Source: Caecitellus pseudoparvulus
Taxonomy: Eukaryota > Protista > Bigyra: Bicosoecida
Length of the DNA: 64,000 bases
Direction: 5' to 3'
NCBI GenBank assembly: GCA_965644315.1
Contig: CBFFRQ010000029.1
Span: 250,548 to 314,547 of the forward strand
Shown: positions 4,191-18,840 of the stretch, one piece after another
How the letters are laid out: every line of letters starts with the position of its first letter
Numbering within the stretch: the stretch's first letter is position 1
Program-made: the position numbers and the translations under genes
Notes under the pieces: generated by a model
What the model was told of the DNA's origin: nothing
Databases searched by the model: none
What the model saw: the letters and a program-made list of their open reading frames with translations, nothing else

Positions 4191-6186
4191 ATGCAAGTGG
4201 ACCATGAGGCGACGGCAGCCCTGCTCCTGCTCATGCAGGGGATGCATGGGCGGACAGGGCTGCGGGGAGGCGGCCAGCCTGAGCTGCAGGAGCCAGGTAT
4301 GACGTGGCGAGCCCTGCGGAATTCGCCCCGCACCCACACTTCTGCCCCCCGCCTCACACACAGGTGTGAACATGCATGACACCGAGTTCGAGCAAATGGA
4401 CAATGTTCTCTACTCTGACTACGGCAGGGCTGTTATGCGCAGCCTGAGCATCCCAAAGGCGGCCCAGGTTCTCCAGCCAAAGGGCACACTTCCTCCTCCT
4501 CCCCTGGATCGCGAGCGCGTGGTGCCTGCGGCCCTACCCAGCGCGCTGCGGCGTGGTCCCAGCCTTGTGCAGGCACTAGCCTCTCGACGCGTGGGGGGTA
4601 GCGCCTTCATGCGTCGCAGGGGCCGCAGCACCGCAGCGCTAGCAGCTGGGCACGTGCCCAACGCCCGACACGCCACAGCGGCGACGCTGGACGGCCGGGC
4701 GTACACGGGCCAGTTCAGCAAGAGCGGTGATCTGTTCGTGTCGGCGGGCCAGGCCGACGTCGTGACGCTGTATGACACGAGCGACCCCTTCGCCTGGACG
4801 CCGCACAAGCGCATCCAGTGCCCGAACATGTCGTGGACCATCACCAGCGTGGACGTGCACCCCCAGGAGCGCTTCATGGCGTACACGACCATGGACAGCA
4901 CGATGTACCTCGTGAACATTGGCGGCAGCACCGAGCTGCACAAAGAATTGCCCCTGAGTGCGCGTGCCGGGACAGCGGCACAGAGAGCAGGTTCTACAGG
5001 CCCTGACTCACCCGCCTTCGACCCAGCCGCTGGCGGGACCGGCAACCCAGACAGCACGTTTTCCCCATATGACCAGATGCTTGCGCGGTTCGGCGTGTTC
5101 CAAGCCAAGTTCAGTGGCACGGGGGCGGAGCTGCTGGCGGCATGTGGCGGCGGCGCCATCATGGTGTTCGATGTGGAGCGGGACACGACGACGCACTGCG
5201 TGCCGGCACACCACGGAGACATCAACGCCGTCGCGTGGGCAGACCCCTCCCCAGGCTGCAACATTGTCCTGTCCGGCGGCGACGACCGGCAGGTGAAAGT
5301 GTGGGACCGCCGCACCATGGGCAGGTATGAAGTGGACGTCGGCGGCACCCCCGTGTACCCCCGCCCAGCTGGGTACTTGCCGGGGCACTTGCAGGGTATT
5401 ACGTCCCTGGCAGGGCGTGGGGACGGCCGGTACGTCGTGTCCAACGGCAAGGACCACACCGCCAAGGTGTGGGACCTGCGGAACTTGGTCACCCCCGCGA
5501 CGTACGATGCGGGCGGCGGGCGCAGAGCTGGGGGGTGGTATGGTGACTATGACTACCGGTGGGGCGAGTGGCCTGGGTGGGGCGACTGCAAGCGGCACCC
5601 CATGGACGCCAGCGTGCTCACGCTGCGAGGGCACGACGTCACCGCCACGCTCATGCGAGCCTACTTCAGCCCCCTGCACAGCACAGGCGGCGCCTTCATC
5701 TACACGGGCAGCTTCAGCCACGGCGTCGTTGTGTATGATGCTCTCACAGGGGGCATTGTGGACACTCTGGCGGGGCACGATGGGGCGCCCGTGCGGGACG
5801 CCTCGTGGCACCCGTCCCACGCCGTGCTCGCTTCGTCAGGCTTCGACGGCACAGTGCAGCTGTGGCACCACACGCCGACAGCTCGCGACGATGTGGACTC
5901 CCGACGGACGCAGCGGCAAGAGGCTCTTGCCGCTGCGCTGGAGGCCCGGGCCGGTGCAGGCGACGCAGCTGCCGACGCGCAGCCGGACCACGAGGCCATG
6001 CTCATGGACTTCATTGCCAACCACAATGTGGGGTACTTCGTCGATGGGGCAGGGCGGCGGCGGTACATCGTGCTGGCAGACGCACCGGGGAGTGACGCAG
6101 ACGAGGCCAGTGAGCACGGCACGGAAGACAGCGACCATGACGGGGACACACCACAGGCTGAGTCGCCCGACAGTCAGGCAAAGTGA
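4191..6186 (+). CDS. DCAF11: WD40 protein, DCAF11/WDR23/LEC14B-like (DDB1-CUL4 substrate receptor)
   Basis: Probable ATG 4191, intron 4297-4363; WD repeats SGGDDRQVKVWDRR, GHLQGITSLAGRGDGRYVVSNGKDHTAKVWDLR, DYDYRW, HPMDASVLTLRGHDVTATLMRAYFSPLHSTG, VRDASWHP, typical of DCAF11. Confidence 0.88.
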
Positions 6187-6324
6187 GGCTGCGAGTAAAC
6201 CAGTACATACCATGACAATGCAACTGCCACCACGCTAAGTTCCTGTGTCATCAGCAGTGGGTGAACGTGGAATGGTGAGGTCGGAAATTGCTCCAGGCTG
6301 ACGGCGTTGACTCCACAGACAGCC

Positions 6325-7443
6325 ATGGCAGCTGGCAGCCCCCCCGCGCTGCAGCAGAGCCCACAAGAAGATGAGCTGTCCCACCTCAACGTGCGCTTTG
6401 CGAACTACGCCATGAGCAACCGCTCGTGGCGCCAGCGTTTCCAGGAGCAGGCTGCAGAGCTGGCCAAGTTGCAGAAAGAACTCGCAGAGCTGCAGGGCAG
6501 CCAAGGGAGAATGCAGCACCTCAGCGATCGAGCAGAGCGGGCTGAAGCAGAGGCAAAGCTTGCAAAGATAGCCCAGGCTGAAGCAGAGGCAGACGCAGCA
6601 GCACAGCGGCGCGCAGCTGAAGCTGGCCAGCAACGCCTGCAGGCGCTGGAAGCGCACGCCGCCGAAGTGGAGACTGCGCTGGCCACAACCCGCAAACAGG
6701 CGGCAACTGAGCTGCAGGAGCGCCTGCAGGCACAGAGTGACCAGCACCGCGAGGAGATGCGGGCCGCTGCAGAGCGCTTCCACGAAGCCCTGACAAGCCG
6801 CACTGCTGCGATGCAGGCGCACATCGCCAGCGCCACCCAGCAGCAGCTGGAGAGCATGGCGCACCAGCTGTCAAGGCTGCAGGAAGAGAAAGAGGAACTT
6901 GAGAAGCTCCTCGCTGAGAGCGTGCAGTCTGCCGAGGAGGCCTCTGCACTGTCCACCCAGCTCCTTGAAAACTTGGCTGAAACGCAGGCCGGAGCCAAGG
7001 CAGCCGCCGGCCAGGCAGCAACGGAGCGGGCTGCACTGCAAAGCAAGCTGGACGCCACGGTCCACGAGCGCGACACTCTTGCCAGCGAAGTGGCAAGGCT
7101 GCGGGCGCAAGTGGAGCGCTTCAACGTCGACATTGACCAGTTCCGTGCAATGATGGAGGAGGAGGAAGCCCACCACGCACTTCGGCCGCCGAACCTGCCC
7201 AAGACCCACCTCCTCCCCCCTCCCACACAGCCTCCACCGCTGCCCCAAGCCAGCGAAGGCCACCACAGCAGCCCGGCGCGAGCCACGAGGCTGGCAGTGC
7301 CAACTGAAGGCAGCAAGGACGGCACGCCCCATGGCACAGCCACCGTGTACGTGCTGCCCAGGGGGTACGGCTCGTTTGGGGCCAATGCAGGGAGGGGGGT
7401 ACCAGCTGTGTCCCCCGCCCAGGTGAGTCATACAGCATGGTGA
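6325..7443 (+). CDS. Intermediate-filament/lamin-like coiled-coil protein (paralog A)
   Basis: EDELSHLNVRFANY resembles the IF coil-1A motif and FNVDIDQFRAMMEEEE the coil-2 end motif, with continuous heptads between. Possible alternative start ATG 6272 plus a 44-nt intron 6275-6318. AATGCA at 7460 supports the 3' end. Confidence 0.7.
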   Translation: MAAGSPPALQQSPQEDELSHLNVRFANYAMSNRSWRQRFQEQAAELAKLQKELAELQGSQGRMQHLSDRAERAEAEAKLAKIAQAEAEADAAAQRRAAEAGQQRLQALEAHAAEVETALATTRKQAATELQERLQAQSDQHREEMRAAAERFHEALTSRTAAMQAHIASATQQQLESMAHQLSRLQEEKEELEKLLAESVQSAEEASALSTQLLENLAETQAGAKAAAGQAATERAALQSKLDATVHERDTLASEVARLRAQVERFNVDIDQFRAMMEEEEAHHALRPPNLPKTHLLPPPTQPPPLPQASEGHHSSPARATRLAVPTEGSKDGTPHGTATVYVLPRGYGSFGANAGRGVPAVSPAQVSHTAW

Positions 7444-7733
7444 AGGAGTCTTGGCGTGAAATGCACCGCGTTCGGCTCATGCCAGCGCCCACCCTCAGCT
7501 TGGAGAGCACCTGGCATAACCACTCAGGCCAGGCTCAAAGGTCCACTTGCCGCCCTCAGGCAAACTCCACCACCTGCACTGCACACACGCCACTTCTGCG
7601 CAAACACTGCTTGCTGTCCCAACGACAGACGTCCACCGGGAAGCCACCTCCCCCTCGTTGTGCTCCGAGGAGGAGCGCGGACTCCGTGCGGGAATTGCTT
7701 TCAACGCAGGCAACAAGCCCCCGCTGCTGCACG

Positions 7734-9152
7734 ATGGCAGAGATGACAGAGCGATTTCTGAAGGACCTGTGCAAGACGCATGATCTGTACAGAACTCCTC
7801 ACTTGAATGACATTCTGTACTTGCACTACAAGGTGCGCCACAGCCACGTGAAGGTGGGGCTGCCCATCCGACCAGTAAAAACGCCACCCCGCCGGCTTGC
7901 CTGCACAGGGCTTTCGAACCATCCAGAACCTGGACGCGTACACGGGGCTGAAGGTGGTGTATCTTGAGGGTAATGGCCTCACCTCCATGCTGGGGCTGCA
8001 CGCTCAGAAGCAGATGCGCACGCTGTACCTGCATGAAAACTGCATTGAGCAGATCGAGGGGCTGGAGCACATGGTGTGTGGGCCTGCTGTGGCCCGGCAA
8101 CGGAGCTGCAGGGCATCCCACTCACACTGCCTCCCCTCCCTTTTTTCGCCCAGAAGGACTTGAGCACGCTGAACATCAACCAGAACTGCATCAAGAAGCT
8201 GGAGGGGCTGGGCGCCCTGCCCAAGCTGGACACGCTGCACGTCGCCCACAACAACTTGAGCAGTCTGGACGACTTGGAGCACCTGAAGGAGCTGCCGGCG
8301 CTGTCCAGCCTGGACCTGCAGCACAACAAGATTGAGAGCCCGGAGGTCGTGGACCTCCTGGCGTCCCTGCCCGGCCTCAAAGTCCTGTACCTGCAGGGCA
8401 ACCCCTGCGTGAAGGAGATCAAGCACTACCGCAAGACCATGATCGCGCGCTGCGCTGGCCTGCGGTACCTGGACGACCGCCCAGTCTTCCCTGATGAGCG
8501 TCTGCGTGCGGAGGCGTGGTGGGGCGGCATGCAGGAGGGTGGGCGTGCGGCAGCTGCCGCCGCTGAGCGGGCCGAGCTGGAGCGGCAGCGGGCTGAGAAG
8601 GCTGCCAAAGACGAGGCCAACTTCCGCCACCTGGAGCAGCTCCTGTACAAAGGCAAGCGCTCCCCGCTGCTGCCGGTGAAGGATGCCGGTGTCGTGCTGC
8701 CGGGGGCAGACAGCGCCTCCTCCGGCGATGAGGGTGAGGACGCTGCTGCCATGCCGGCGCCGGAGGCGGCCGCGCCAGCCGCTGACGTGGGCAGCGGGCA
8801 GCCAACGCAGCCCACTGCGGCCACCGTGCCACCCACGGCAGCTGTGCCTGAGCCCAGCTCTGCCGCAGCCCCCGTCGCCAGCGTGGGCCCTCATGGCGGT
8901 GCACTGGAGTTCAAGCCCAGCGTGCACGCAGCAGCAGGGGCGGCAGCCGACGCACCTCCACTGCCTGCCGCCTCCACGGGGAACACAAAGTACGACTACA
9001 CCGACCCTGCGTCTCGCCCCAGCGGCGTGGCAGTGCCTGCAGTCGTCGGGGCGGACGGTGTGCCTGTGCCGGACTACAGCTCTAACCCGGCGGCGGGCAC
9101 GTACCCGGCACGCGCTGCCCAAGCAGAGACGGCAGTGGACGTAATGGATTGA
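7734..9152 (+). CDS. DNAAF1: Dynein axonemal assembly factor 1 (ODA7/LRRC50-like) LRR protein
   Basis: ATG 7734; introns 7833-7908 and 8074-8153; MTERFLKDLCKTHDLYRTPHLNDILYLHYKGFRTIQNLDAYTGLKVVYLEGNG, LRRs, LRR cap LYLQGNPCV..YRKTMI..LRYLDDRPVFPDER. Confidence 0.92.
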
Positions 9153-9176
9153 AGCAATGCAATGCCGCTGCCTGCC

Positions 9177-11076
9177 TCAGCGCCCATACCGGGAGCGGGG
9201 GGCGGACCGAGCACGGGTCCCCGTCATGGGGGACATGGGCACGGTGTGGGGGGGTGGCGCGCCGTACTGCCCGCCGTACATCTGCCCTGCCGTTGGCGCA
9301 GGGCGCCCAAACGTACCAGGTGTGCCGTGGTGGTGGCTGGGCGTGAACGTGGGGCGCGAGCTGCCCTGCCCATACTGCTGCCCTGCTGGGGCGGCGGCGC
9401 CAGGCTGCCCGTACTGCTGCCCTGCCGTGTAGGAGGAGGTGGAGGTGTAGGTGTGGGTGGAGGAGTAGCCACCACCCCGGAACTGGGGCGTGTAGCGAGG
9501 GTCGGCGCCGGGCGCAGCGTAGGAGTGCGTGGGGGCGGTGCCTGGGCGTTGGCTGGCCGGTGCACCCCCGTGGAAGGCGGCGCTGCCGGGCTGGCCACCC
9601 GAGGAAGTAGGGGGGCGCTGCTGCGCGTAGGAAGCGGGTGGTGCCGCACTTTGGGGCTGTCGCCCACCACTGTACATGTACGGGTTCTGGCCGGCCGCCG
9701 GCACCATGGCGGTGCTGCGCGGGCCAGCACCTGGAGGGGAGGAGTGCTGGGTGGGGCTCGCACGCGGCAGGGGGCCCTGGCGGCTGGCAGGTGGCTGTGG
9801 CAGCAGGCCTTCAGCTGGCTTCTTGGCCACGGGCAGGTTGTGGCGCTCCTCCTCCAGCTCCAGGATGCGGCGGTACTCTTCGATCTCCGCCGTGAGCCTG
9901 ATCTTGACGCCCATCAGCGCGTCGAACTCGGCGTCCTTGGCTGCGCGGCACGCCTTCTCCTCCGTCAGCTCCTCCATGAGGGTCTGCTTCTCACGGCCCC
10001 ACTCCGCCGCGGCAGCCTTGTGCACGCCCTCCGTATCGTTCAGCTGGTGCAGCAGGTGCGTGGCGAGCTCGGAGGCCTTGTCCGCCTCCTCCACAGCACG
10101 GGACACGTCTTGGCGCAGGCGGTCGTTCAGGCCCTGCAGCTCGTCCACCCGCCCTCGCAGGTGGTGGATCTCGCCGTCGTACTTGTCGTGCAGGTTGTGT
10201 TCCAGCTCCGCCAGCTTGGCGTGAGTGGCGGAGTCCCACTCGGCACGCGCCTGTGCCATCTCCCGGGCGTGGCCGTCCTTCAGGTCCGCCAGCACGCTGT
10301 CCTGCTCCGCCTGCAGCTGCTCCATGCCCTCTTGCAGGGAGCGGATGTGGGCCTCCTGCTCTGAGCCCGTCTTGAGGGCGTCGTTCAGGGCAGTCGTCTT
10401 GTCGTGCAGCTGCCCGCGCATGTCCCCCTGCTCAGCAGACAGGCGGTCAATGAGCTCCTGCTTACGTGCCGCGTCGGCCTGCACGTGGTCCAGGCGGTCC
10501 CGCAGCTGGTCCCGCTCCGCCTGGGCGCCCATGAGGGACTTCAGCGCCTCACGCAGCTGCACGTTCTCCGCCTCCAGGTGGTGCACCTTTGCGTCGGCCT
10601 TTTCCCCCGCCTCACGCTCCGTCGCCAGCTCGGTCTCCTTCTCCAGCAACTTCACGCGCAGTGTCTCGAAGTCCGTGCGCAGGCCTCGGTTGTACACCAC
10701 TGCAAGGTGGCGGGGAGGGCGGGCGCAGTGCAGCACGGCGCTGGCTTCGCGGCGTCCTTGCGGAACTCAGCCCTCGCAGCGACACCTGCACCAAACTGCC
10801 TGAACAGGCGATGGCAAAATGTACACAAGCACGACAGGTTCTGCTCCCTGTCCAACTTTGCCTTGCGCGACAGCACAGCCATGCAGGCACATGCCAGTTG
10901 CGTGGTCGCAGCGACACCGACGCACCATAGTTCGCGAGGCGCTGGTTCAAGTTGGACAGGTGGGCCTTCTCTTCCTCACGGGCAACATGCTCGTGCTGCA
11001 CATGAGGGCTTCCGTGGGGGTGGGGTGGGGACCCTGCTGCACGCGCAGGGGAGCCCATGCGGGAGGGGGACGCCAT
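9177..11076 (-). CDS. Intermediate-filament/lamin-like protein (paralog B), ~557 aa, low-complexity G/P/Q/Y tail
   Basis: ATG 11076, GT-AG intron 10925-10700 joins EEEKAHLSNLNQRLANY to VVYNRGLR; rod end LMGVKIRLTAEIEEYRRILELEEERH matches the IF consensus LxxKxxLdxEIxxYRkLLExEE; head has SPSR/SPAR motifs. Confidence 0.88.
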
Positions 11077-11278
11077 GTTGCAGCTTGTGGTGCCGTGTGT
11101 GCAATGCTGCTGGGAGCCAGGCTGCAAGGGGCGAGCGGGGCAGGGGCGCGCGGGGGACTGCGTGAGCACATGCGCGGCAGCGTGGGTGTGTTGGACATGA
11201 ATTGCAATGACCTGTGTAATTGCTGCAAGGGGGCAGCGGGCCACGCCCCTGCCTTGTGCGGGAAGCTTCACAGGCGAC

Positions 11279-14200
11279 TCAGGCGCCCGGCGGCCGCTGC
11301 AGCGCTGGAGGTGCCTTGATGGCGGGTGGTGCCTGTCCTGCCTCCTGGGGACTGCTGCGCTCCCCCATCGCCTCCGCCTTGGCCAAGAAGTCGCCCTCCT
11401 CCAGGGCGCCGGGCGGCAGCCAGGCGATGACGGGCACCAGGGCCACCAGCTGTGCCGCCCGCACCGTCTCGGAGATGAGGCGGGCGCTGAAGATGTTGCG
11501 CAGGGCCGTGTACACGACACTGATGACGATGAGGTTGGCCAGCAGGAGCCCGATGCCGAGGGAGCGCAGGTCATTCATGCGCTCGGCAAACTCCGCCTTG
11601 TCGGCGGCGATGGTGCGCCACAGGTCCGCACCCAGGCTCACGTGGTACAGGCGGTCCATCACGAACAACTGCTCCTGGCTGGCGATGGCCGAGGCATTGG
11701 TACCTGCCAGCTTCACTGTGCCGTCGTAGGTGGCGGAGTCAGTGGCGGAGCCGTAGGTGCACAGGGTGCTGTCGCGGGCGCCTGTAAACTGCGGCGCGTA
11801 GCACTGCAGCAGGGTGGCTGCCGAGAGGGAGAAGTAGTTCAGGAGGATGCTGATGCTCTGGTCCACTGACACGCCCAGTTGCTGTGGCGGCGCGAAGGCG
11901 ATGGCCTCCACGCGGACCTGCTCGTCAGGGGATGTCAGCGCTGGCTGCCCGGTCGTGGTGGTGTTGGCGGGTGTGGTGATGGCGGAGAGCAGGGAGAGAC
12001 TGGGCAGGTCCACCCCTGCGCGGGCCTCTGCCTGCTGGCTGGCGCGCACGAGGCTCACGCCCGAGTTCAGGCCGGCTGTGAGCTCCTGCAGCTCCCGTGT
12101 GGCGCGTGTGATGGCGTTGAGGGAGGTGGACAGTTCCACTGCGGCGGTGGCGGGGGACACCACCGCGCCGTCCCCGATGACCACCTCCCGGGCCAGCGTG
12201 GCGGCAGAGATGACGTGCGCAGCCCGCTCCCCTGCCAGAGACGTCAGGTCCACCACGACGTCCACATCCCCCACGGAAGCCACGGACACGGCGAAGGAAG
12301 ACACCACTGCCACTAGGAGGGCGATGACCGACACACACATCCACCAACGCACCGCCGTCAGCGTGTCACCCGACACCTTGTCCCACAGCTTGCGGGAGGC
12401 GGCCGAGTCACGCTTGCTCTCAGGCGCCTTGGGCTCTTTCGAGCGGTCTGCCTTGCGCTGCCAGGCGCTGACGCCAGTGGGCGCCGTCTTAATGACGTTG
12501 CCCCGCCCGCTGCTGCTTGCGTGGCGCAGCAGGAGCTTCTTGCTGCTGCCGCGCTTCTCTTCCGGTGGCGCGGTGGGTTTCAGGCGGCCTTCCTCGGCAG
12601 CTGCGGAGGAGCACGCCGCCTCCATCAGCACCATGCTCTGGCGGTGCTTGGCAGTGCTCTCGGCAACGCTCATGTCAGCGGCTGCCTTCAGCCCCTTGTC
12701 GTCGGAGTACTTGTGGATGGCAGACACGTAGCGCTTGGTGCTGGGCCCGATGCACATGTCCTGCTGCGTCCCCCCGCCGCCATCGACCGGCTGCACGGGG
12801 GTGCCATCCTCGTCCGAGCCCCACCCCCGCCCAACGCCGGACACGCCGTCCTCTGCCGACAAGTCGATGCTGGTGCCGAGCTTGGAGGGGTCCAGTCCCC
12901 ACAGGACATCCTCCAGCATGTCCCCTCGCTCCGTGTCAAAGGTCCCTGCCAGCTGCATGTAGTGCCGCCGAATCGTGCGGTACTTGACTGCCAGGTCCGC
13001 CACACTCTCAGAGGGCACTGCCTGCACCACGGCGATCATCTGCCGGCGCGTGTACCGCACCAGTGTCAGCACGGAGCGGAAGACGACGACGACGATGAGG
13101 GCGACGCAGAGCACGCCGAGGGCGACCAGGGCGCCGCCAGAGATGACCGCCACGCTGACCACGCTGGCATCGCGCGCCTTGAATGCGGCGGTGACCCCGC
13201 CGATCCTGGCCTCCCGCCCCATGAAGCCGTTGCGCGAAGCGAGGGCCCAGGACAGGCTGCGCGCTCCAAAGGACGTCGATGAAGGCGTGCCCCCCGTGTT
13301 GGCACCGTCGCAGGCCAGGGCGGGGGCCGCCTGGTCAGCGGTGGCGCCCTTCGCCAGCAACAGCGCGTGGCTGCCCAGCACGTTGCCGTAGTCCCACAGG
13401 GACACCTGCAGGAGGGCCAAGTCGTCCATGACGCCGCAGGCTGCTGTGCCCAGGGATGTGTTGCCTGACGCAGTGGGGGCCGGCGAGGAGTCGCCTGCCC
13501 GCAGCGCCAAGGAGGCCGCCACTGTGGTGGACAGGGCAGCTGGCACGTGCAGGGCCCTGAGGGGCTCCACCCACTGCTCCTCCACATCCGTCTGCACAGC
13601 ATCGGAGCCGCCGGCGCCGTCCTCTGACACCGCCCTGAACAGGGACGAGTGGAAGCGCAGGAACACCTCAGTGGACTCCAGCAAGCGACTGCGCGCCTCC
13701 ACCACCGCCAGCGCCGCCGAGTTGTTGGAGAAGGCGGGCGGGGGTGTGCTGCCGGCGAAGGACGGCACGCCAGCGCGACCCGCCTCCACCGCGGCAATGT
13801 TCACATCCCGGGCGTGCTGTGTCACCTGCACGCCCAGGTTGCGCCAGAGGGCCCAGTCCAGGGTCAGGTCCAGCGTGTCCTGCGTGCGGGTCAGCATGAC
13901 CTCGTTGGCGGTGAAGGTGCCCACTGCCAGCAGGGCCAAGGCCGTGATGAAGCCAGTCAGCCAGGCACGCGCAGAGGCGAGGGGGTGCCGGGCAGCGCGC
14001 CGCCCAGCCGCCCTCGTGTTGCCGGCGTGCCTGGCAGGGTCGCTGCTGTGCCCGAACCAGTCCCCCATCATGCCCCTGCCCTCGCCCTGCCCCTGCACCA
14101 CGGCGACAGGCCCCGAGGGGCCCACCGCCACCGCATCCAGGCCGTGCGTGATGCCACTGCGCCCTCGGCGGGCTGCCGCCAGCAGCAGCAGACTCGTCAC

Positions 14201-17200
14201 GCTGTGGGCGTCGTCATCTTCCCCGTGGCTGTCAAAGGCGCTGGTGTCAGTGGCCTCGTCGCCGCCCCCGGCGCCAAATGCAGTGGCGTGGGCCGGCACC
14301 TCCCCCCGCTCCACGGCGCCCTGCACCTCCATGTTGGCGTACGCCTTGTCCAGGACGCGGTGGGCCAGGTCTGTGTCACCCACCACGTGCAGCAGGAACA
14401 ACCCGTACGACTTCATGGCCACGGGGGAGCTGGGGAAGGTCTTGATCAGCGCCACGTACGCAGAGTCGGCCTTGGTCGTGCAGGTGTGGATGACGTGCAG
14501 CAGCTCAGCCAGCTGCGCGTTCACGGTGGCTGCCGCAGCCTCCCGCACCGCCTCCGACTGCGCTTCAGACGCGCCCAGCAGCGCCTCCACCGCCTCGTCC
14601 TCCTCCACGTCCTCAGCCGGCGTGTCCAGGCCTGTGCCTGGAGAGGGTGGTCGCTGCGGCGCAGTGGCGCCACCACTCTGCCGGGGATGCCTCAGCGCAG
14701 GCTCGGGGGCCTCCTCCGCAGGCGCCAGCCCAATGGCCTCATCCAGGCTGATGGGGCCCTTGTCACGTTGAGAGGGCCGCATGGCAGCGGCGGCCTGGGC
14801 GGCGGCGCCCTCCCCCCCGTCAGCCTGCCCCCGCTCCTGCCGCAGGCGAGCATGCCGGGCCGACCGCAGCGCCCTGACGGTGCGGAGGGAGCGCTGGGAT
14901 CGCCCTGACAGGGCACTCCGGCCACTGCGAGCGGAGGAGGGGCGCATTTCAAAGGCAAAGCTGCCAGGGCGGCGAGGGGAGGCGGCTCCCCCGCCCTGGC
15001 CCGTGCCGTCACCCCCCGCCAAGGCCAGGTGCATCTGCATCACCAACTGCTCTGCCACGTCGCGGGAGGTGAGTTGGCGCTGGTGCCCCGTGAGGGGGCT
15101 CTGCAGGATGAAGCTGGCCTTGCGCCCCAGCGTGCGCCCGCGGGTCATGGGGGGAGACCGGGCCGCCAGGGCGCCGTCCAAGGAGTGCCGGCGGCCGACG
15201 GTGGAGCGGGAGCGGGTGGACTTGCGGGGTGGAGAGGCCTCGTGCCGGACACGCTTTGAAGTCCCTTGTGAGGGGGCCTTCGACGACTTGGAGAGGAAGG
15301 GGGGTGGCGGGCGGCCCGATTCCCCGGCCTCTTCCTGCTCCTCCTCGTCTTCCTCGATGATGGCAGAGGGCAGGGGCGTGGCGCCCTCCTCCGGCTCGGG
15401 GACGCCCTCGGACACCATGTACGTCTCGTGGTACTGGTGCATGATGTGCCACATGGTGGCCAGGGCACCGACGGCCTGCAGGTGGTTGTCCCGGGCCTGT
15501 GTGAACAGCTGCTCGAACTGCATGATGGAGATGGAGTCCAGCGCCTCCCCCAGCTCCGCCGCCTGCTTCACCGACCTCCACGACTGCAGCTTGGTGAAGA
15601 GCTGGAACTGCAGGTCCATGGCGGCGGTGCGCGAGAGGCGCTTGGCCGCCATGAGCAAGGCCACCGCCTCCACGCCGCTGGCACGGTGCAGGAGGATGAA
15701 AGTGGACCTCGCCAGGCGCAAGAAGATGGAGGAGGGGAAGACGTTGAGGCCCGCCCGGAAGACGACGTCAGCCTGGGCGATGGAGGCGGCGGAGATGACG
15801 GCCGGCGACAGCAGCATGCGGGACATCAGCTCCACATCACTCGCGAACAGCCAGTACTGGTCCACGATGGACGCCAGCGTCACGTGCCCCGCGCCCTTCC
15901 ACTTGCCTCCGCAGCAGTCCCGCTCCACCTTGCCCTTGCCCGCCTGGCGTTGGTGGATGAGGGCCTGCGCCGTCACCGAGTGTCGCCCAGCACGCCCCTG
16001 CACCACCTTGGGTGTGCGGGCGGCCAGGGTGGCGGTGGACTGGGCACGCCCCGTGCCCCGCCGGCGCATGCCCTGCTTGCGCATGCTGCTGTCGTAGTCC
16101 ACCGTACTGGAGCAGCAAGTGCAGAAGAGCCAGTGCAGCGTGGTGCCTGCCGACCACAGCAGGCGCGAGATGGACCAGAAGCAGCAGTACTGCGCGCCAC
16201 ACCCGCAGCAGCAGCAGAAGCAGCCACAGCAGCAGCCTTCAGGCGGCACCAGCACTTCGTAGTCATCTGTCAACACCTTGGACCGCCCGGGGCCACCCTT
16301 TCGCTGCAGGGGGGAGGCGACGGGCGTGTGGCTGAGGCCGCCACCGCCCACGCCCCAGGCCACCTGCCGCAGGCTGGAGTCGGGCCGGGCAGGGTGCCCC
16401 TCCCCACTGCTCATGGTGGAGGAGCGCCTGGCAGGCAACTCTCGCGTGGGCTCGGGGGACCTCACGTCCACGCCGCCCTTGCTCCCTCGAGGGGCGCGGG
16501 GGGGGGGCTTCGGGGGCCCCTTCACCTTACGGACCTCCAGGGACCGTGAGCGGGGCACGGTGACGACGCGCCCGCCGGCGATGCCTGTCTCCCCCACACT
16601 GGGCCGACGGCGGGTCGCCTTGGCCTCCCCTGCGAACACCACCGCCGTGGCCGCCTCCGGCTCACTGTAGGGTGTCGTGCGCCCAGCACCTGGCAGGTGG
16701 GACTCGTGGCTGGCCGCGTGGGCAGGGAAGGAGGTGGAACGTGCCGATATGGGCACGCTGGGCGCCTGTTCGTCCCCGCTGGAGCCCCCCTCCTCATCCA
16801 GCAGCACCGCAACCCGTGCGGCAGCCATGCTCACCTCCCCGCTGGTGCGCCCGTCGCCGGTGGAGGACGGCGGGCGCTGCAGGAAGCCTGGCGCTGTGGG
16901 CAACACCTTGGCCCCGGCAGCCGCGTAGCGCGTGACGGCGGTGGTGCCTTCTGCTGCCGCGTGCGAGACGTCCTTGCCAAACACGATGCGGGCGGTGGCT
17001 GCGGCGATGGAGCTGTCTGAGAACAGCTTGGCCGCCTGTGCGTCTCGCCCCGAGTCCCCCGCTGCCGAGGTCACGTCCCGCCCGTGTACCAGGCGGCTCA
17101 CGGCACGGTCGTGGTTGCGGAACATGCCTGCCGAGTCCAGCGCGCCCCCACGGGCAGACTCCAGGAAGTCCTGCACGTCTGCACCGGCGCTGTCCTGGGC

Positions 17201-18840
17201 CACCTGCGCCTCCGCCCACTCCGTGTCACCCTCCGTGGAACCCTCAGTGGCCACGGACAGCCGGCGCAGGCGCGATGTGCCGCCGCCGCCGCCGCCGCCG
17301 CCAGAGGGACGCCGCCCGTGACTGGGTGGGAGGGCAGGCGTGGTGGTGCCACTGACGTCCTCCGGGCCAGTCGTGGGTGCAGTGGTCATGGGCATGCGGA
17401 CCTGGCGCGGGGCGGCCTGGGGAGACAGGCTGCCGCTGGGGGGCGCAGAGTCCGTGGCTGCGGACCTCTTGTGGCGGGCGGGGTCCTGCACCAGCCACGC
17501 CAGCTGCAGGAATTGCCAGTACCGGTAGCGCACCCACGCCACAGCGGCCAGGGCGACGAAGAGGGACAGGGCGTTCCAGCCGCCGTACACGGCGACGTGG
17601 TACACCCACCAGTCATCGCCAGGCGGGTCCACCGTGTCCAGCTTCGCGTCCAGGAGGGGGCTGTAGAAGCGTGCTGCCCGCACCAGCACGCCCCCCAGTG
17701 CCACCCACGTCAGGGCACCGTAGGAGCCCACCATGATCTCGTTGGTGATGGACCGGAAGTACGGCAGCGTGACGCCTGTGAAGGCAGTCTGCATGCTCAG
17801 CAGCAGGATGGCCACGAGGCCCAGTGAGAAGGGCTGCCCTGGGTCCAGCGTGGCCATGCCGGTGAGGATGGTGCGGACGAGGGTGTCCAGCATGTCCACG
17901 CGGCCCGACACCCGCGACAGGACGCTGGAGGAGAGGGGGTTGTCTTGGAAGTAGGTGAGGCGCACGAAGAGGGCGCCAGGCACCAGCACAGCCAGCGTCA
18001 TGGCTGAGAAGATGCGCAGGAAGAGCACAGCGGGGTGGCTGCAGGAGGCCACCTGCCCGCCCGTCAAGTCTCCCTCGTCCAGGGTGGAGGTGCTGACGTC
18101 GCCATTCACGGCGGCCTGCACCCCCACGACGTCGTCCGTGACCACGGCAGGGTTGTCCACCGACGCAGAGGGCGGGCCGATGAAGGAGAGCAGGGCGTCG
18201 CAGTTGAAGGGGATGAGCATGACTCGCAGGACGGGGATGTATGCCACTGTCACGATGAGCACGACCAGGACGCGCAGGAGGCGCAGGGCCCACAGGTGAG
18301 CGTACCGCCCCGACACGATGATGTTCCCCACGAACGTAGCGGTGATGACGGTGACCCACACCAGCGCCGCGGCGATGGCGAAGCCAGTGTAGTACAGCGC
18401 AGGCTGCCGCACCAGCACGAGCAGGTCAGTCGTGCTGGCCACACGGAGCCAGGAAAAGTACCGCGTGGGCCATCCAAAAGCCACGCTCAACAAGAGGGAG
18501 AGGATTTCAGCCACGCCCACCAGCACGATGAGCTGTGGGAGGGGGTGGTGGGCGGCGCACGTGATGGCTCAACACATCGCCAGCGTTACACCTCCTTGGC
18601 GTCGCCCTGCACGCACCACGTCCGCCAGCTTCGTGCTAGTGCTGGCCCTGTGCTGCTCCGTCATGACATTCAGAATCTGTGTGGCAGGAGGCGGTGCCAG
18701 CGTGCAGGTTGGCCGGGAAAAAGCCTGCAGCGTCGAGCGCTGCCGCAGCGACGAGGCTGTGCAGGCTTCCGTACCTTGAACGCTGTGGAGAGCCATGGCG
18801 ACAGGTTCATGCGCAGGGCGTTCAAGCTCGAGGTCTGCAT
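11279..18840 (-). CDS. Tiny-macrocysts TmcB/TmcC-like large multipass membrane protein (~2460 aa)
   Basis: ATG 18840; introns 18774-18677 and 18616-18533; N-terminal multi-TM block; LDSISIMQFEQLF..HLQAVGALATMW and ADSAYVALIKTFPSSPVAMKSYGLFLLHVVGD resemble the TmcB/C helical region; two C-terminal TM-extracellular-TM modules. Confidence 0.72.

Follow-up and report, generated by a model that had tools for sequence, protein, structure and literature searches.

Sequence evidence for two tail-less, lamin-derived intermediate-filament paralogues beside a canonical lamin in a bicosoecid protist

Lamins occur in many protist groups, usually as one canonical gene per genome, according to two surveys (Kollmar 2015, PMC4448529; Koreny & Field 2016, PMC5630835). 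The same surveys report lamin duplicates in ichthyosporeans (one copy without CDK1, the nuclear localisation signal (NLS) and CaaX), in some rhizarians and in Salpingoeca. They also describe homologues without the lamin tail domain (LTD) as hard to detect; protist surveys relied mainly on the tail domain, so that LTD-less homologues would escape them, as the later survey puts it (PMC5630835). This report concerns two such genes, A and B, in a window of 64,000 nucleotides from the bicosoecid Caecitellus pseudoparvulus (contig C29:250548-314547 of an assembly of 30.6 Mb in 215 contigs). The window is that whole stretch, and positions without a contig name are counted from its first letter.

Tail-less lamin derivatives are known in animals, for instance in copepods, and several distinct lamin subtypes are found only in metazoans (Kollmar 2015, PMC4448529). 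Cytoplasmic intermediate filaments (IFs) are regarded as a metazoan-specific innovation in a 2025 preprint on Cilin (bioRxiv 10.1101/2025.08.21.671432). In animals, the supposed route to such filaments is the loss of three parts: the signal for nuclear import, the folded tail and the lipid anchor.

Several described proteins resemble A and B in part. The second lamin paralogue of ichthyosporeans such as Creolimax may have an extranuclear role, as its authors suggested. It belongs to the Holozoa, in another supergroup, and the passage on it lists CDK1, NLS and CaaX as lost, but not the LTD (PMC5630835); in A and B the LTD is gone too, the stripped copies number two, and CDK sites are retained in B. 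LhsLamin-C of Lepeophtheirus is, like A and B, a lamin duplicate that keeps the rod and is without NLS, Ig domain and CaaX, but it is an animal gene and has gained an N-terminal PDZ extension (PMC4448529). The other animal lamins without LTD or CaaX (PMC4448529) likewise differ from A and B in being animal genes.

Bilaterian cytoplasmic IFs, the tardigrade cytotardin (PMC4829535) and the ctenophore Cilin (bioRxiv 10.1101/2025.08.21.671432) share with A and B the proposed route of lamin duplication, loss of nuclear targeting and neofunctionalisation. For the animal proteins the cytoplasmic location has been demonstrated, whereas that of A and B is suggested by their sequences, and any likeness of role would be due to convergence. 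The canonical lamins of protists (oomycete, dinoflagellate, haptophyte and bicosoecid lamins, and NE81 of Dictyostelium) have the rod and the rod motifs in common with A and B. Unlike A and B, which have none of the three, they possess an NLS, an LTD and a CaaX box, and the genome's own lamin is of this canonical type. No description of lamin paralogues without LTD, NLS and CaaX in a stramenopile was found in the searchable literature.

Comparison of the sequences confirms that A and B are paralogous IF proteins without a lamin tail, derived from lamin, which coexist with a canonical lamin outside the animals. An earlier sequence-only reading of the window had proposed two paralogous IF-like genes with rod-start and rod-end motifs in an apparently non-animal genome. 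Both genes were found in place with their motifs, and the host genome, at 30.6 Mb and about 67% GC, is non-animal.

Gene B has the rod-start motif HLSNLNQRLANY (LNQRLANY) and the rod-end motif EIEEYRRILELEEE; across the codon split by its intron the protein reads ...LNQRLANY-V-VYNRGLRTDFETL.... Compared as profiles (hhalign), B and lamin match at 99.9% with E 3e-31. Exon 2 alone matches the Pfam Filament model (PF00038) with 39.5 bits (E 7e-10, model positions 35-313), the curated cut-off being 40 bits; the B orthologue P0005 reaches 40.1 bits, and the six-frame genome scan, neighbours included, 41.5 bits. In the PDB, B matches by sequence only the coil 2B segments of keratins 10 and 14 and of lamin A. 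The AF2 model of exon 2 has a long helix at residues 4-286 (pLDDT mostly >90) and a disordered tail (<50). When this model was compared with the PDB by Foldseek, a vimentin tetramer chain came out on top at E 1.6, a single long helix being unsuited to such searches.

The head of B contains two full CDK-consensus sites, SPSR and SPAR, according to a motif scan. Pro, Gly, Ala, Ser, Gln and Tyr abound in its tail, which ends in ...APRSRYGR; short tail motifs such as NPYMY and the RS-rich C-terminal end are kept among orthologues.

Gene A carries the rod-start motif ELSHLNVRFANY near its N-terminus (LNVRFANY) and the rod-end motif DIDQFRAMMEEEE. Phe replaces Tyr as the rod-end aromatic residue, and orthologues of A carry IDHYASLLEAEEE. 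A head of about 17 aa, with minimal SP sites only and no full CDK consensus, is followed by a rod at about 14-282 and by an 88-aa tail rich in Pro, Ala and Gly, which ends in ...VSPAQVSHTAW. The AF2 model shows one long helix at 14-282 (pLDDT mostly >90) and a disordered tail (<50). A tripartite build of head, long helical rod and non-helical tail is thus predicted by AF2 for both proteins.

The place of A in the IF family is based on profile comparison and not on the Pfam Filament model; its Pfam matches are to generic coiled-coil families only, and weak. The profile of A matches those of B and of lamin equally well (hhalign, 98.3% and E 1e-14 in both cases). A profile of A and its orthologue was searched against a library of 1.84 billion protein representatives and returned five proteins in total: an A orthologue (6.6e-83), a B representative (2e-9), the lamin of the same genome (7e-8), a related lamin, and P0016, a more distant canonical lamin. 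All three lamins returned bear an LTD, and the matches from this library included neither myosins nor kinesins nor coiled coils of any other kind. Run against the genome it comes from, the A profile recovers A itself, B at 1e-20 and the lamin at 7e-16. In feature searches of the ESM Atlas, which serve as leads only, the best ten family-bearing matches of B were all Filament clusters (scores up to 0.87); A scored at most 0.89, against unnamed clusters.

The sequence-only reading had suggested looking for a separate canonical lamin in the genome, and one exists. In whole-assembly Pfam scans, a single open frame, which lies on contig C54, combined a Filament match (47 bits) with an LTD match behind it (PF00932, 57 bits). 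Its head contains the CDK-type sites SPAR and TPAR and ends in LNNRLESY, and its rod ends in EIEHYRRILEDEE, after which come a KRPR NLS, the LTD and a CAMM terminus. The genome scan for LTDs returned this lamin and weak matches on four further contigs. The lamin differs clearly from the Cafeteria lamin that Koreny & Field 2016 (PMC5630835) give in their supplement, where its motifs are absent throughout. Searched with the A and B profiles, the genome gave only A, B and the C54 lamin; by these searches its IF family is one of three members.

Three other six-frame matches to PF00038 were considered and rejected as IF genes (C69:1139640-1140896, C74:34305-34946 and C64:196282-196644). They are long open reading frames (ORFs) that encode tandem-repeat coiled coils, for example with a repeated AEAGRAESEAEVERLRGVVSE unit.

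Under the name Symbiodinium sp. KB8, NCBI lists proteins (CAE7363985.1; 'LMNA, partial') that share 90%-identity clusters with B and the lamin and match them at 90-100% identity; the lamin (C54; L001 1241-3015) is 100% identical to a protein so labelled. Because a genome of 30.6 Mb and 67% GC is no Symbiodinium genome, these matches probably come from contaminant contigs of this protist within the KB8 assembly.

Three features of the lamin tail are missing from A and B. A motif scan found no K[KR]x[KR] NLS in either protein, nor any six-residue window with four basic residues. KRxR stands at the homologous site in all of the aligned lamins that bear an LTD, and P0016 has the NLS-type motifs KRSR and KRTK. 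Neither protein has a Pfam LTD match, nor does any other part of this contig. Neither has a C-terminal CaaX box: A ends in HTAW and B in RYGR, compared with CAMM, CRVM, CCVM and CVVM in lamins. The lack of LTD and CaaX had been noted before for both genes, and the classical NLS proves to be missing as well.

A and B align with 29% identity over 292 aa (E 2e-18), a resemblance far above chance. Three shared motifs had been pointed out before and are present: AAGSPP, which each head carries; N-R-x-(L/W)-R, which follows the Tyr; and LLP..PLP.AS..HSSP, which comes behind the rod. The first of them is not kept in orthologues. A of both species groups, and B of this species, have LLP...PLP...HSSP behind the rod, a distribution that fits a single tail-less ancestor of A and B. 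Recent gene conversion was considered as a source of the tail motif and rejected, given that the alignment is gapped and only moderately similar and that the motif is also found in a relative's A; an ancestral motif is more likely.

The distance from the rod-start Tyr to the rod-end aromatic residue is 276 in B and 245 in A, exactly as first read. It is 283 in vimentin (Y117-Y400) and 331 in human lamin A (Y45-Y376). Of the canonical lamins, that of this genome has a span of 298 residues and P0016 one of 260. These two values bracket that of B, and the short rod, once taken as a sign of a cytoplasmic-type protein, loses its value as such. All differences in rod length fall within coil 1, which differs by 31 residues between A and B; coil 2 is gap-free across A, B and the lamins of this lineage. 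An in-house scan for heptad register, linkers and stutter was flat and gave inconsistent break points.

Gene structure ties the family together as well. The C54 lamin has a phase-1 intron directly after the rod-start Tyr codon (TAC G/GTGCGT...CAG/TG, slashes marking splice sites). Position and phase are common to this intron and those of B in the window and of both B and A at the related locus L015, where gene A reads TAT G/GTAAGT...CAG/CA. Gene A of this genome has lost the rod-start intron (6325-6420 compared with L015 6204-6400).

Orthologues of B, all of them tail-less, are 53-64% identical and come from five metagenome clusters and one NCBI assembly; lamin orthologues with LTD and CaaX come from the same sources. 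Orthologues of A are only 23-27% identical, and those at L015 and L018 are syntenic. On L015, a metagenome contig, the order of genes (WD40 gene, A, leucine-rich repeat (LRR) gene, B, giant TPR-like gene) is that of the window. In GCA_024449685.1, A (P0015) follows the WD40 gene, and B (P0002) adjoins the LRR gene on a different contig; the adjacency of B and the LRR gene is kept in L013-L017. Since lamin, A and B are all present in at least two related species, the three-gene set is older than the split of these species. The genome thus holds a canonical lamin beside two stripped copies that have been kept across related species.

Both copies are under purifying selection. In the same pair of species, B has dN 0.09 and dS 1.2 (dN/dS 0.08, with a range of 0.08-0.10 among its orthologues), and A has pN 0.31 against a saturated pS of 0.79. 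The dN of A is 0.40 in this pair. Listed single-nucleotide polymorphisms (SNPs) between two strains of this species are 6 synonymous and 3 non-synonymous in A, and 11 and 3 in B. Judged from these substitutions, A is constrained, yet evolves about four times faster than B. A C-terminal motif, GYG..AN.G..GV..VSP, is conserved among the orthologues of A.

In a rod-domain tree built by maximum likelihood, the A and B sequences form clades with support of 100/98 and 99/97. The two clades join at 83/83, apart from all LTD-bearing lamins, including two more distant ones. In the large protein library, A and B have the lamins of their own lineage as closest relatives, and this speaks for an independent origin: as a lineage-specific offshoot of that lamin, A and B would be independent of the animal cytoplasmic IFs. 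Of the earlier suggestion of an independently derived cytoplasmic-type IF, the independent derivation from lamin is supported and the argument from the short rod is not.

Transcription was followed with Logan contigs, mapped over 6000-11500, from three metatranscriptomes of seawater or marine origin and from a further run that was DNA-like. Spliced joints in the LRR gene indicate that runs flagged "probably DNA" include RNA-derived contigs. The intron of B is seen directly, as the joint 10699>10926 in spliced contigs from runs X1 and X2; this establishes both the intron and the transcription of B. The contigs extend over B at 9137-9644 and 9700-10699, with an overall reach of 9137-11126, the far end lying 50 nt upstream of the ATG.

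Additional 3' exons, which might have supplied a tail domain, had been flagged earlier as something to look for. The contig 9137-9421 crosses the stop of B (9177-9179) without splicing, so B has no further 3' exon with an LTD or CaaX. The transcript of the downstream LRR gene begins by 7574, which leaves no space for a tail-domain exon 3' of A.

One X2 contig joins 9405 to 9965 within B. The joint has TG..CG ends and 21 matching letters on one side, and the contig is probably chimeric or foreign and not an isoform.

A stepwise history would account for these observations. The lineage's own nuclear lamin gene would have been duplicated, and one copy would have lost its classical NLS, its Ig-fold LTD and its CaaX farnesylation box. 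This stripped copy would then have been duplicated again, probably nearby, to give B (slow and transcribed) and A (fast and unseen in RNA). Each protein is expected to form parallel coiled-coil dimers through its helical rod of about 270 residues. The rod-start LNxRxAxY and the rod-end EIxxYRxILExEE would bring about the head-to-tail elongation that lamins and vimentin show. In the absence of an NLS and a farnesyl anchor, the polymers would lie outside the membrane-bound lamina, most likely in the cytoplasm, and the two CDK-type sites in the head of B would permit their disassembly under cell-cycle control, as in lamins. B probably self-assembles; A could be a minor variant, or one restricted to a certain stage, and need not be an obligate partner.

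Filament formation outside the lamina would be the most likely role of both proteins. Taken as a whole, this explanation (origin from a lamin duplicate, loss of NLS, LTD and CaaX, and homopolymers that are most likely cytoplasmic) is considered probable. A bolder statement is that this heterotrophic marine protist evolved a cytoplasmic IF cytoskeleton from lamin independently of animals, with B constitutive and A fast-evolving and conditionally expressed; it is put forward tentatively, as a real possibility that falls short of the favoured account.

If filaments of A or B are extranuclear, the transition from lamin to cytoplasmic IF took place at least once outside animals, and an independent three-gene system becomes available in which to ask which changes suffice for it. 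An independent cytoplasmic IF would also contradict the view of cytoplasmic IFs as metazoan-specific.

Several points weigh against the lamin-offshoot, cytoplasmic explanation. The cytoplasmic location would follow from the missing NLS and CaaX alone. The orthologues of B end in R-x2-PY after a basic stretch, where B of this genome has RSRY; judged by its pattern, R-x2-PY is a possible transportin-type, non-classical import signal. Neither A nor any of its orthologues has a Pfam Filament match. Searches with B and with the lamin took one exon at a time, and the Filament score of B comes from exon 2 alone. The grouping of A with B has moderate support and brings two long branches together (the program issued a warning), in a tree of 15 sequences that samples neither metazoans nor the wider range of protists. 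Finally, no RNA contig falls within 6238-7574, which takes in all of gene A, in the three metatranscriptomes, and both flanking genes are covered; coverage by contigs cannot prove the absence of a transcript. At the least, A is much less abundant than B in those RNA samples.

The main rival explanation places A and B in the nucleus, as accessory proteins of the nucleoplasm or the lamina comparable to the CaaX-less lamin C, brought in by non-classical import or by co-assembly with lamin. They are, after all, the closest paralogues of lamin, the head of B keeps lamin-like CDK sites, and the basic stretch and R-x2-PY at the C-terminus of B orthologues could serve import. Kollmar 2015 (PMC4448529) also keeps tail-less or CaaX-less animal proteins among the lamins. 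The explanation is nevertheless doubtful: K[KR]x[KR] is missing from A and B while the aligned LTD-bearing lamins have KRxR, the PY motif is missing from B of this very genome, and the rods are 22 (B) and 53 (A) residues off that of the lamin, which makes in-register heterodimers unlikely. If A and B were nuclear, they would still represent an undescribed class of lamin partners without NLS or anchor.

Alternatively, A and B might form an obligate heteropolymer in the manner of type I and type II keratins, as the sequence-only reading had entertained. Spliced RNA contigs exist for B and both neighbours and for A none in the three runs, the two genes evolve at unequal rates (dN 0.40 and 0.09), and their coil 1 regions are 31 residues apart in length. 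These differences tell against keratin-like co-assembly and make the heteropolymer unlikely, even though the genes are linked, paralogous and kept together in three species, and in this species have a tail motif in common. The linkage itself is broken in the contigs of one relative.

That gene A is a functionless duplicate in decay is more improbable again. Its lack of RNA coverage and of a Pfam Filament match, its 23-27% identity to orthologues and its very long branch would suit such a fate. A decaying gene would hardly have kept a frame of >320 codons intact in three species, in synteny after the WD40 gene, together with the rod-end motif and the C-terminal GYG..AN.G..GV..VSP, and pN (0.31) is well below pS (0.79), with strain SNPs in the ratio of 6 synonymous to 3 non-synonymous. 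Chance likeness of generic coiled coils unrelated to IFs is close to refuted: E-values of 1e-4 to 1e-7 are within reach of unrelated coiled coils, as Koreny and Field warn (PMC5630835), and A does match generic coiled-coil families weakly, but the profile E-values of 3e-31 and 1e-14 lie far past that range, the library-wide search gives lamins and B and no myosins or other coiled coils, the intron position is shared, and coil 2 is free of indels across A, B and this lineage's lamins.

The genes in question and their immediate surroundings are listed in Table 1. Genes are compact in the window, with few and short introns, and GC varies from about 56 to 75% along it.

Table 1. Coordinates of genes A and B and of neighbouring features in the window.
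Feature	Position	Strand	Description
Gene A	6325..7443	+	Intronless coding sequence, single ORF; ATG 6325, stop 7441-7443; 372 aa
AATGCA hexamer	7460..7465	+	17 nt after gene A stop; candidate poly(A) signal
LRR gene	7734..9152	+	Exons 7734-7830, 7907-8072, 8153-9152; between A and B
Gene B, exon 2	9177..10699	-	Remaining rod to about exon residue 286, then 219-aa tail and stop
Gene B, intron	10700..10925	-	226 nt, GT..AG, phase 1, right after Tyr codon of LNQRLANY
Gene B, exon 1 (coding)	10926..11076	-	ATG 11076; 50-aa head and rod start, MASPSRMGSPARAAGSPP...HLSNLNQRLANY

A donor-like site, CAG/GTGAGT, is present at 7423-7431 (GTGAGT at 7426), six codons upstream of the stop of gene A. It lies directly after the conserved ...VSP motif, and the A orthologues end two residues further.

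The hexamer AATGCA is found at 6217-6222, 7460-7465 and 9156-9161, in each case 4-31 nt after a stop: that of the WD40 gene in the first case, that of gene A in the second and that of the LRR gene in the third. As a poly(A) signal, the hexamer behind gene A would leave no space for another 3' exon. RNA contigs of the WD40 gene end at 6230-6238, which is 8-16 nt past the AATGCA at 6217 and fits a role as a poly(A) signal. No exact AATGCA follows the stop of gene B.

The gene between A and B has Pfam matches to LRR_4, LRR_9 and LRR_8, and among proteins of solved structure it is closest to PPP1R7/SDS22, DRC3, LRRC23 and dynein light chain 1. The two introns of this gene, 7831-7906 and 8073-8152, are both seen in RNA contigs. 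It is an SDS22-type LRR protein; the earlier label of DNAAF1 was not confirmed, and the gene stands outside the IF system. The 3' ends of this gene and of gene B converge within a few tens of bases.

Just upstream of B, an ORF of 2,415 codons extends over 11279-18526 on the minus strand. Its orthologue of 2,559 aa has a weak TPR_TmcB match and adjoins B in the contigs of two relatives.

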